Sequence record: MW812341.1
Direction: 5' to 3' (one strand)
Length of the DNA: 64,000 bases
Both the position numbers and the translations under genes were made by a program. Of the stretch, positions 2,765 to 9,040 are shown in pieces; position 1 is the first letter of the stretch; every line of letters begins with the position of its first letter. Under the pieces are notes generated by a model. It made no database searches and was not told the DNA's origin. It was given only the letters and a program-made list of their open reading frames with translations.

Positions 2765-3151
2765 TTATGCTTGCATCAGCAAGTTCTTCAGATGGCTGGC
2801 TGTACCATACGACCAGGCTTCACCGTCCCGCACTTTCTCTTCCTGAGCATTGGCAACACGACGTAGCGAGATAACATGTTCTGCTTTACCTGCAATAGGA
2901 ATGTTAGCGGGAACAGTTGCTTGCTCCACATAACGCCTCACATCATCGAACCCTTCTTTCTCACTCCAGTCAATTTCCACTTCATCAGAAACGTCGAGCT
3001 TCTTTGTATTTGTTGTCTCGTCCGGATGGAAAGCAAACCCCCACTCGATACATTCCAACAGTTGTTTGTCTAGCTCGGTCTTAGGCTTAATCTTACCTAA
3101 CGTTTCTGGATGAGCGAGAATAACATCCAGAGGACGCAACTTCGTCTTCAT
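2765..3151 (-). CDS. hypothetical protein (128 aa)
   Basis: ORF with GGAGAG RBS. Confidence 0.75.
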   Translation of the reverse strand: MKTKLRPLDVILAHPETLGKIKPKTELDKQLLECIEWGFAFHPDETTNTKKLDVSDEVEIDWSEKEGFDDVRRYVEQATVPANIPIAGKAEHVISLRRVANAQEEKVRDGEAWSYGTASHLKNLLMQA

Positions 3152-6100: not shown

Positions 6101-6109
6101 ATAATGCAA

Positions 6110-6190
6110 AGACCGTGGGTGGACTCGAACCACCAGAACCGGTAGGAATCGAACCTCCTGCATCCTAGGATGTTTTCCCAAGACACGGCC
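6110..6190 (-). ncRNA. tRNA-like RNA with two T-arm motifs and no anticodon arm
   Basis: Acceptor GGCCGTG/CACGGTC, T-arm GGTGG-TTCGAGT-CCACC, second AGG-TTCGATT-CCT hairpin upstream; no CCA. Confidence 0.55.
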
Positions 6191-6197
6191 ATAATAG

Positions 6198-6297
6198 GGC
6201 GAACGAAGACAGGATTCGAACCTGTGACCAAGATACCCGCCGGGTATCTCGCTATCCGATTATGAGTCGGGTGTTTATGCCTCTAACTTCATCGTTC
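6198..6297 (-). tRNA. atypical tRNA(CAT) with long variable arm and 8-nt acceptor strands
   Basis: CCGA-CTCATAA-TCGG anticodon arm, GAGATACCC-GGC-GGGTATCTT variable arm, ACAGG-TTCGAAT-CCTGT T-arm, GAACGATG/CTTCGTTC acceptor. Confidence 0.7.
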
Positions 6298-7451: not shown

Positions 7452-7575
7452 AGAATTTGCGTCTGCTTGCTTGAGAGAGTCTACCTCTCGCACTATTTCA
7501 CACCCCGCAGATAAGGGAATCGCGCAACCGCTAGTATAGGTGACTAACCAAACCGCAGGGTTACGTTCTCGTGAC

Positions 7576-7651
7576 TGGTGGTTCCGGCTGGTATCGAACC
7601 AACGACCGCGCCATTATGAGTGGCGTGCTCTACCGACTGAGCTACAGAACC
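7576..7651 (-). tRNA. tRNA-Met(CAT) elongator type (or Ile2)
   Basis: 76 nt, loop CT-CAT-AA, G1-C72 pair (not initiator), CCA. Confidence 0.92.
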
Positions 7652-7655
7652 GAAT

Positions 7656-7732
7656 TGGTTGTCTCGAGTGGACTTGAACCACTGACCTCCCGCTTATCAG
7701 GCGAGCGCTCTAACCAACTGAGCTACGAGACA
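7656..7732 (-). tRNA. tRNA-Ile(GAT)
   Basis: 77 nt, loop CT-GAT-AA, CCA. Confidence 0.95.
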
Positions 7733-7741
7733 TCAAACTGA

Positions 7742-7892
7742 TTGGGACACAGAGAATCGAACTCTGGACCGTGACATTGTCGGTTACTCTAGACCGCTAT
7801 GAGCTACACACCTAGCAGTCACGCTAGGCAAGGGAGGATTCGAACCACCGACCTTCCGACTCTGTCACACTTTACCACTAAGCTATATCCCA
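7742..7892 (-). ncRNA. twin-tRNA RNA: two tRNA bodies fused through their anticodon stems
   Basis: Outer TGGGATA/TGTCCCA acceptor, D- and T-arms; anticodon loop replaced by a circularly permuted second cloverleaf. Confidence 0.75.
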
Positions 7893-7898
7893 ATAAAT

Positions 7899-8019
7899 TG
7901 GCAGCCGCTATAGGACTTGAACCTATAACCTCATCACACCGCACCACACTTGCACGCCATGGACGCCTATGCATAGTTAAAGCGATGTTCTGTCTCTATC
8001 CACTTGAGATTAAGCGACT
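7899..8019 (-). ncRNA. CCA-terminated tRNA body with about 44-nt expanded anticodon loop
   Basis: AGTCGCT/AGCGGCT acceptor + G + CCA, TCTC-AAGTGGATA-GAGA D-arm, CATCGC/GTGATG stem, ATAGG-TTCAAGT-CCTAT T-arm. Confidence 0.65.
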
Positions 8020-8025
8020 AATGTT

Positions 8026-8103
8026 TGGTGCACCCGGCTTGCCTCGAACAAGCGACCTCGGGGGTTTCACTCCCGCGCTCTGACCAATCTGAGCTACAGA
8101 TGC
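8026..8103 (-). tRNA. tRNA-Phe(GAA)
   Basis: 78 nt, loop GT-GAA-AC (unusual G32), CCA. Confidence 0.88.
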
Positions 8104-8110
8104 ATAATGA

Positions 8111-8185
8111 TGGAAGGGGCATCTGGATTTGAACCAGAGCATACAGGGATCAAAGCCCTGGGCCTTACCGCTTGGCTATACCCCT
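8111..8185 (-). tRNA. tRNA-Gln(TTG)
   Basis: 75 nt, loop CT-TTG-AT, CCA. Confidence 0.93.
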
Positions 8186-8191
8186 AGAATT

Positions 8192-8273
8192 TGGTGGGGG
8201 AGGATGGATTTGAACCACCGTGTGGGATAACAGATTTACAGTCTGCCGCGTTCGACCGCTCCGCCACTCCCCC
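8192..8273 (-). tRNA. tRNA-Tyr(GTA)
   Basis: 82-nt class II cloverleaf, loop CT-GTA-AA, CCA. Confidence 0.95.
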
Positions 8274-8279
8274 GTATTG

Positions 8280-9040
8280 GGTGCCAGGGCACCTCGCAAC
8301 TCCTACACACCGGCAAGCGTACGCAACGCAACGCCCTGTGCAGCAACAACGAGATTCCCCGACATATAACAAAGAAAACTCATTCGTTAGAATTCGCTTT
8401 GTTATCATCGACATATATAGGGATAAAACTGTAATTGGACTTTCAGAGTGAGAATGAGGGTGATGGACTTCTTCTTCTGAGCCAGCGTATCCGCCGGTCT
8501 TAGCGTCTCCAAGCACCACCCTCTTTCACATTACCATTGGGATAACTTGTCCCACGACGGGGGGTTATCTCCAGCGACACACAGCCGCTTCAACACTTTA
8601 TAGGAACTTAATCCCATCAAAGATTTTCAGATTGTAGTATTACAGGCGTTAGCTTAGCGGTTTAGCAGTCCGGTGCTGGCCTGTCCGTTACGGACACATA
8701 TTTCCACGCAGGAAGATGTCTGTATCGGGAACCCTCACGGGAACTCCCACCGCCTGTAAGCCAGTAATGGGCAAGTGACCAGTGTCGTACGAAAGCCCAA
8801 ACGTCCTTTATAGAACGAATGAATTCGCGCACAAGCTCTTTTAGTCCTTGCATATATAAGGGCTCTCATCGAGTAAGTTAGTTTACGGTCAGTTACCTAC
8901 CCCTGCGGGTAGTGCTTTGTGTAACCGGCTATCAGCGACTTACTGGTGTGCGCTGAGTCTCAGCTGATACCGTATCGGACGGGATACCAGCCCGGCCAAA
9001 TGAGTGGTACACACGGCAACGGTTGGAAGCCAACCCCAGC
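8280..9040 (-). ncRNA. candidate large structured ncRNA region
   Basis: About 760 nt with no convincing gene; many perfect helices (ATAACAAAG/CTTTGTTAT, TTACAGGCG/CGCCTGTAA, TGTCCG/CGGACA, CTACCC/GGGTAG, TATCAGC/GCTGATA). Confidence 0.45.

Follow-up and report, generated by a model that had tools for sequence, protein, structure and literature searches.

Among the tRNA genes of Erwinia phage pEa_SNUABM_9 (SNU9; MW812341.1), a 247 kb jumbo phage of the genus Machinavirus with the fire-blight bacterium Erwinia amylovora as host, lies a 121-nucleotide (nt) tRNA-like element with extra sequence at the place of the anticodon arm. This locus raises the question of whether the RNA is the precursor of a tRNA, the remains of one or a molecule that acts outside decoding. 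The element is encoded at positions 7899-8019 on the minus strand of the 64,000-nt stretch of MW812341.1 that was analyzed here, referred to as the window. An initial annotation had described it as a tRNA body with an anticodon loop expanded to about 44 nt, and had proposed either a non-decoding mimic or a precursor that would yield an ochre suppressor tRNA. In our analysis the place of the anticodon arm was found to be taken by a 61-nt irregular rod, the pairing of which is conserved in a homolog. The RNA very probably cannot read codons and, on balance, it is probable that the element is a real, selectively maintained non-decoding tRNA mimic.

A homolog of the element was detected in Erwinia phage Asesino (genus Erskinevirus), and these two copies, termed type A, were used to build a covariance model (R1). 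RNA position p corresponds to window coordinate 8020-p on the minus strand. The parts of the element, as read from the sequence and from the folds described below, are the following:

7899..8019, minus strand: whole 121-nt tRNA-like RNA gene (type A long-arm tRNA-like RNA), 143.7 bits with R1
8020..8025, minus strand: 5' spacer AACAUU, from the CCA of tRNA-Phe to RNA position 1
8013..8019, minus strand: 5' strand of the acceptor stem, RNA 1-7, paired with 7903-7909; pair G5-C68 is A-U in Asesino
5' of 7993..8009, minus strand: 3-nt linker UAA, RNA 8-10, from the acceptor stem to the D-stem
7993..8009, minus strand: D-arm, RNA 11-27, stem UCUC/GAGA, loop AAGUGGAUA; Asesino differs only at D-loop positions 16/17
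7932..7992, minus strand: 61-nt rod, RNA 28-88, in place of the anticodon arm (minimum free energy fold, RNAalifold consensus and pair counts)
7978..7981, minus strand: 4-nt bulge UUUA, RNA 39-42, containing the initially proposed UUA anticodon; matched by a bulge of equal size and position in the Asesino type A copy (UUCA) and in gp17 (CAAU)
7954..7966, minus strand: apical hairpin of the rod, RNA 54-66, core GUCCAUGGC
7910..7931, minus strand: variable loop AGGUU, RNA 89-93, and T-arm, RNA 94-110, with T-loop UUCAAGU (local Rfam tRNA match of 13.9 bits); pair 95:109 is U-A in SNU9 and C-G in Asesino
7899..7909, minus strand: 3' strand of the acceptor stem, RNA 111-117, discriminator G 118 and CCA 119-121

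The body of the element was read directly on the minus strand, where the acceptor stem AGUCGCU/AGCGGCU (7 base pairs (bp), including U3.G70), G73 and a CCA encoded at 7901-7899 were found as initially described. The T-arm AUAGG-UUCAAGU-CCUAU follows a variable loop of 5 nt, and the D-loop AAGUGGAUA carries A14, R15, G18G19 and A21. The D- and T-arms are canonical, as had been stated, but the body is not fully normal: 3 nt link the acceptor stem to the D-stem, and the model of an expanded anticodon loop leaves five nucleotides (CAGAA, 28-32) unexplained between the D-stem and the proposed anticodon stem. The elements of an L-shaped tRNA (7-bp acceptor, GCCA, GG-UUCAAGU-CC, A14, R15, G18G19, A21 and Y48) were all present and are kept in Asesino. 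Since all nucleotides for the tRNA tertiary pairs are available, the RNA is predicted to fold into an L-shape.

Positions 7600-8400 of the window match pEa_SNUABM_9 at 100% identity, and ARAGORN called 15 tRNAs in the window. The element belongs to a minus-strand tRNA operon, where it lies between the end of tRNA-Phe at 8026 and the start of tRNA-Ile at 7732; the GenBank record MW812341.1 holds no feature between these two genes, and the element is unannotated. It keeps the register of the operon, the spacers measuring only 6 nt on the tRNA-Phe side and 7 nt towards the next element. The upstream spacer travels with the element (AACAUU in SNU9 and AACAUC in Asesino, AACAUY), despite the upstream gene being tRNA-Phe in one phage and tRNA-Asp in the other. 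Because the features of a tRNA body are found in register within a tRNA operon, chance resemblance is no serious explanation for the element.

In the minimum free energy fold of the SNU9 RNA, positions 28-88 form a single long irregular hairpin and not a 5-bp stem with a 44-nt loop. RNAalifold, run without a supplied structure, returned the identical rod with seven compensated pairs. About 22 pairs in three helices over 61 nt therefore stand where a 17-nt anticodon arm would be. Helix I (28-38/78-88) comprises 11 stacked layers below the bulge, namely nine standard pairs and a tandem G.A/A.G, and is followed by the 4-nt bulge, helix II (43-49/71-77), an internal loop and helix III (54-58/62-66), which is closed by the loop CAU. 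The two type A copies do not differ in the apical GUCCAUGGC or in the rod base CAGAACAU.

The two ways of folding this region were compared on the Asesino copy, which is unannotated, lies between tRNA-Asp and tRNA-Ile and aligns to the SNU9 element over 121 nt without a gap at 76% identity. With the rod model, 97% of the cells of 37 pairs were paired in the SNU9/Asesino alignment and six pairs showed double compensatory changes, four of them in the rod, while slid controls reached 23-51% paired. The anticodon stem CATCG(C)/(G)TGATG of the initial annotation (33-38/83-88) can be drawn in SNU9, but its six pairs (91.7% of cells paired) showed no double compensatory change and one of them is broken in Asesino. 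In the rod register, the same 5' strand (33-38/78-83) carries two double compensatory changes: positions 36 and 37 changed from C to U and from G to A, and their rod partners 80 and 79 changed from G to A and from C to U. The rod register is preferred, since positions 36 and 37 compensate only with their rod partners and stay uncompensated with the partners proposed initially. The sequence that had been quoted as the expanded loop is 46 nt long (RNA 38-83), and the TGCA...TGCA hairpin drawn inside it (four pairs, 75% of cells paired, one double compensatory change) loses two of its four pairs in Asesino. The minimum free energy fold, RNAalifold and the homologs thus agree on the rod at 28-88 in place of an expanded loop, and the conserved pairing puts UUUA, which had been taken as part of a CT-TTA-A equivalent to tRNA positions 32-37, into a 4-nt bulge within a continuous helix.

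The conservation of pairing was further assessed by a simulation in which the observed number and kind of substitutions were placed at random. At least 19 of the 21 rod pairs were kept with P = 0.027, all body pairs (16/16) with P = 0.06, and rod and body pairs together with P = 0.0015. Between the type A copies, sequence conservation was 66% in the rod and 87% in the body. The eight body differences between SNU9 and Asesino are all either compensatory (5:68, 50:64) or located at sites that vary among tRNAs (D-loop 16/17, purine R57 and N73).

A second, more divergent subtype, type B, comprises Asesino gp17, phiEaH2, Stratton and one IMG/VR genome, while type A consists of pEa_SNUABM_9, Asesino and two metagenome relatives. 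Asesino gp17 (locus coordinates 2981-3101; also in Stratton) is 121 nt long and is labeled tRNA-Ile(aat) in GenBank. R1 aligned gp17 over the full model, end to end, with 39-43 bits, compared with 142.9 bits for the Asesino type A copy; as R1 is a home-made model, its E-values are rough. Type B RNAs are 120-121 nt long and share with type A a similar body and the three-helix rod. In the predicted gp17 fold, 11 stacked layers make up helix I, the 5' strand then bulges by 4 nt, and helix II of seven pairs, an internal loop and helix III of five pairs follow. In the three main rod helices, the four distinct long-arm sequences showed both-side changes at 11 of the 19 pairs, and 89-100% of the cells were paired, although these counts are biased towards the rod because the alignment of three subtypes was fitted to the model structure. 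The subtypes differ in the apical loop and in the bulge, which is CAAU in gp17. Moreover, the D-loop of gp17 lacks GG, and gp17 has a canonical junction, in which the linker is 2 nt long (3 nt in the SNU9 element) and position 26 is occupied; its 3' end is UCCC and not NCCA, the terminal A not being encoded in type B. Judged from sequence and predicted fold, both types form a small family in the tRNA operons of Erwinia jumbo phages, for which we propose the name long-arm tRNA-like RNAs; the SNU9 element shows the tRNA body, the 61-63-nt rod architecture, the location in a tRNA operon and the compensatory changes that characterize it. Since the conserved fold corresponds to a rod-armed, non-decoding design, the isoleucine assignment of gp17 is probably an artefact of intron-tolerant tRNA prediction.

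Type A behaves as a discrete cassette: a silage and a wastewater contig carry it, and pEa_SNUABM_4, ChrisDB and an 18-kb wastewater contig do not. On a 2.3-kb silage-metagenome contig the element occurs with about three substitutions, joined straight to tRNA-Ile and without the element found at 7737-7891 in SNU9. It is also present on a 414-nt wastewater contig, while the 18-kb wastewater contig skips the whole 7733-8024 stretch. The metagenome substitutions are G54A, which turns a G.U of helix III into A-U, and G67A and C68U in the internal loop. In a blastn search of 50,697 phage records Asesino was the sole match, and R1 detected no copy in ChrisDB, pEa_SNUABM_6, pSal-SNUABM-04, pEa_SNUABM_11 or SPAsTU. 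Exact and gapped DNA patterns derived from conserved parts were run against IMG/VR, metagenome contigs and genome contigs, and the matches, vetted by reading and by R1, were chance matches or ordinary tRNAs except for the gp17 subtype, which occurred in two IMG/VR genomes. No description of the 121-nt RNA was found in the literature.

Several observations weigh against a selectively maintained mimic. The two-sequence statistics are moderate, with 22-24 of 500 shuffles reaching the observed values, and the family comparison draws on only four distinct sequences, aligned by fitting to the model. At 76% identity, the element evolves much faster than the neighboring tRNA-Ile (about 95%), and it has been lost in close relatives: in pEa_SNUABM_4 and ChrisDB, tRNA-Phe or tRNA-Gln directly precedes tRNA-Ile. 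Because of this fast evolution and loss, the element is dispensable. Furthermore, no public sequencing run was found to hold SNU9, the RNA-library contigs over this region carry the relatives' ordinary tRNAs only, and the element itself is covered by DNA contigs only.

The same features bear on the alternative origins and roles of the element. If the insert were removed after position 37, a UUA ochre suppressor of about 76 nt would result, and in SNU9 taken alone CAUCG/UGAUG can pair and C-U-UUA-A resembles tRNA positions 32-37; the equivalent triplet of the Asesino type A copy, UCA, is also a stop anticodon. This origin is nevertheless extremely improbable. The stem lacks compensatory support, has a broken pair and leaves five extra nucleotides after the D-stem, and no anticodon is conserved, as the bulge is UUUA in SNU9, UUCA in the Asesino type A copy and CAAU in gp17; comparison of the homologs, which had been suggested as a check on the insert, showed 19 of the 21 rod pairs to be kept and the stem to lose a pair. 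A suppressor tRNA would present a conserved triplet in a 7-nt loop, but here it lies in a helix bulge, and this bulge, 11 layers from the D-stem junction instead of five, could by tRNA geometry not reach the decoding site even if exposed. Rfam RF00005 gave no match to the element at the 29-bit gathering threshold or at E-values up to 10, the local match to the T-arm (13.9 bits) being all that was found, and ARAGORN did not call it either without introns or with introns of 0-100 nt. Virtual splicing by 552 single internal deletions, in which 27-49 nt were kept on the 5' side and the sequence resumed at 66-89, yielded no tRNA call for SNU9 (0/552, ARAGORN), and the eight calls for Asesino had unrelated anticodons, never TTA or TCA. 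A bulge-helix-bulge motif is absent, as the one 4-nt bulge is followed by a 7-bp helix and then by a symmetric 4x4 internal loop. As the initial annotation had noted, no splicing machinery is visible: tRNA-splicing endonuclease, RtcB and Rnl2 (PF01974, PF01139, PF09414) were absent from both phage genomes in searches whose controls responded, while the search for Rnl1 had no working control and was uninformative. Its exclusion of a group I intron by insert length was likewise borne out: the extra sequence is about 44-61 nt, the catalytic core (P3-P9) of such introns takes up about 200 nt or more, and none of the Rfam intron families matched. Finally, TAA is the predominant stop codon, ending 43 of the 61 open reading frames of at least 150 codons in the window (about 70%), and with an efficient ochre suppressor translation would run past the end of most phage genes. 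The other initial proposal, a non-decoding mimic, fits the variable bulge and the conserved rod. Whether such a mimic might be aminoacylated, and donate or sequester an amino acid or a synthetase outside translation, is a separate matter. An intact 7-bp acceptor, the encoded CCA and the full set of L-shape tertiary nucleotides speak for this reading, which we consider very unlikely. Among the synthetases with anticodon-independent identity, that for Ala needs G3.U70, that for Ser a long variable arm and that for His G-1. In the element and its homologs 3:70 is U.G or U-A and not G.U; in the SNU9 element the variable loop has 5 nt and the base before position 1 is U. The discriminator differs among the homologs, with G in SNU9, A in the type A copy of Asesino and U in the type B RNAs, which moreover lack an encoded terminal A. 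For these reasons charging of the 121-nt RNA appears unlikely from its sequence. No phage CCA-adding enzyme was found.

Alternatively, the element could be a decaying relic: insertion of a hairpin would have disrupted the anticodon arm of a former tRNA gene, perhaps a copy of the adjacent tRNA-Ile(GAU), and the remnant would now drift neutrally in a plastic array. The patchy presence among close relatives, a divergence faster than that of real tRNAs and the several other odd tRNA-like pieces in the array are what a relic would lead one to expect, and the body scores nearest tRNA-Ile, with a weak lean to tRNA-Ile(GAU) as the parent tRNA. Neutral drift does not easily account for the lack of any indel at 24% divergence, for rod and body pairs being retained together to the extent seen in the simulation (19/21 and 16/16), for body changes confined to permitted sites or for the recurrence of the three-helix rod in a much more divergent subtype in four further genomes, and we regard a relic as rather unlikely. 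A slightly better case, though still a doubtful one, can be made for a natural tRNA scaffold, in which the rod would be the working part, for instance a protein-binding or regulatory hairpin, and the body would serve only for excision, folding and protection. The architecture is that of engineered scaffolds, which are processed by E. coli factors (PMC3753655), the rod geometry of three helices, 4-nt bulge and internal loop is kept in two subtypes, and the apical and basal motifs of the rod are invariant in type A. Against a working rod stand its lower conservation relative to the body and the differences of apical loop and bulge between subtypes. In addition, no similarity or complementarity to the rod and no antisense target was found in E. 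coli genomes, which served as an enterobacterial proxy, and the rod matched no Rfam family. The apical motif GTCCATGGC showed no enrichment within the window.

For the favored reading, a non-decoding mimic, the following course of events can be suggested. The element would be co-transcribed with the flanking tRNAs, as the layout of the operon implies, and since the spacers of 6-7 nt leave no room, a promoter of its own is unlikely. For RNase P and 3' exonucleases, the acceptor/T-arm/NCCA module is the substrate, whatever anticodon arm it is joined to. By analogy to this enzymology and to engineered scaffolds, RNase P and 3' trimming enzymes would recognize the 7-bp acceptor, the T-arm and the NCCA and excise the RNA, and because the body carries this module and scaffolds of like design are protected, the product should accumulate in an L-shape extended by the long rod. 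The rod with its 4-nt bulge would then occupy the place of the anticodon arm and preclude codon pairing on the ribosome, since no 7-nt anticodon loop is present at the right distance from the elbow. How the RNA acts from here on is speculation: by mimicry it might occupy a protein that binds tRNA bodies, such as a phage factor or a host enzyme that cleaves or modifies tRNAs, or the tRNA body might be a stable carrier for the rod. A more specific and tentative idea, to which we give a low probability, is that jumbo phages make tRNA decoys with a plugged anticodon that titrate a host tRNA-directed immune nuclease or sensor, the neighboring odd tRNA-like genes being further members of such a counter-defence. 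Host enzymes would in that case excise and stabilize the L-shaped RNA, whose body would be bound while the rod offers no cleavable anticodon loop.

Among known systems, the nearest precedent is found in RNA C and RNA D of phage T4 (the species 1 and species 2 stable RNAs), which are likewise small RNAs within a phage tRNA cluster beside bona fide tRNAs and have been described as "RNAs of yet unknown functions" (PMC9697503). They are analogues and not homologs. A complete acceptor/D/T cloverleaf combined with one rod is not seen in RNA C, and T4 belongs to another phage lineage and infects another host; as homologs, T4 rnaC and rnaD were rejected, since R1 scored 13 bits on rnaC, below every true T4 tRNA. 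T4 rnaC itself (locus coordinates 1909-2047; fold z-score -4.6) looks tRNA-derived because of a canonical T-arm, CCGGGUUCGAAUCCCGG, near its 3' end and two long hairpins. Engineered tRNA scaffolds resemble the SNU9 element in that the acceptor, T- and D-arms are kept and the anticodon stem-loop is swapped for a hairpin-closed insert, and E. coli recognizes, processes and stabilizes such fusions (PMC3753655); these are man-made, whereas the SNU9 element is natural and conserved and its insert has no known cargo. YrlA is a non-decoding phage and bacterial Y RNA with T-arm-, D-arm- and acceptor-like elements that are recognized by tRNA enzymes, and it occurs near phage tRNAs (PMC4201824). Its topology is reversed, with a loop-closed acceptor-like stem and RNA ends that form the Ro60-binding helix. 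A Y RNA was rejected here, as RF02553 did not match the element and the TROVE/Ro60 domain was absent from three phage genomes. Transfer-messenger RNA (tmRNA) shares the open acceptor stem with CCA, the T-arm and, at the site of the anticodon arm, a long irregular helix (P2), while the SNU9 element has no reading frame, pseudoknots or G3.U70 and possesses the full D-stem that tmRNA lacks. A tmRNA was also rejected, since the pair is U3.G70, the RNA measures only 121 nt and neither ARAGORN nor Rfam identified the element as tmRNA. Intron-bearing pre-tRNAs (archaeal and eukaryal ones and the bacterial group I tRNA-Leu(UAA)) likewise have extra sequence with extended pairing in the anticodon region. 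They differ from the SNU9 element, which has neither a bulge-helix-bulge nor a group I core, whose phages encode no protein-splicing enzyme and from which no deletion leaves a tRNA.

Other unusual tRNA-like RNAs were observed in the same operon. The next element downstream (7737-7891, minus strand) encodes a tRNA-like RNA of about 150 nt, which ARAGORN in intron mode called tRNA-Met(cat) with a 58-nt intron and which matched Rfam with 26.7 bits on its first half. It is a separate cassette, since the silage relative has the 121-nt element without it. At 6198-6297 (minus strand) lies a tRNA-like gene of 96-100 nt with a long GC-rich extra hairpin (Rfam tRNA, 39 bits), called by ARAGORN in intron mode only, as Ile(aat) with a 2-nt intron. 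The stretch 6101-6200 (minus strand) holds a 7-bp acceptor-like stem, GGCCGUG/CACGGUC, enclosing two consecutive T-arm-like hairpins, GGAGGUUCGAUUCCUAC and GGUGGUUCGAGUCCACC, and was not called by a tRNA finder. The spacer of about 110 nt between tRNA-Met and tRNA-Asp (7465-7573, minus strand) is conserved with 12 differences in wastewater DNA and metatranscriptome contigs, both of which lack the following tRNA-Met, and may be another structured RNA. Outside this genome, Salmonella phage SPAsTU encodes an unannotated tRNA-like RNA of 111 nt (locus coordinates 2804-2914) with normal acceptor, D- and T-arms, whose anticodon stem CCUCC/GGAGG runs into a further hairpin (z-score -4.1); its design is similar and it is not homologous. 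A chance find of the pattern scan, on metagenome contig Ga0315296_10000661 (8308-8416), is a tRNA-like RNA of 109 nt in which two additional hairpins separate the D-arm from the T-arm (z-score -3.2).

Current discussion of phage tRNA clusters centers on their help with codon usage or on the replacement of tRNAs cut by host defences. The element described here suggests that conserved tRNA-shaped RNAs, very probably unable to decode, are part of these operons as well. In it, the tRNA scaffold of the laboratory would have its equivalent in nature, and T4 RNAs C and D would have a parallel; types A and B together offer a concrete and testable gene pair in culturable phages. For public annotation it follows that the gp17-type 'tRNA-Ile(aat)' is probably no isoleucine tRNA, and that intron-tolerant tRNA finders give such RNAs meaningless anticodons. 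Should the RNA turn out to be a decoy or carrier, the conflict between phage and host over tRNAs would gain a mechanism that relies on RNA alone.

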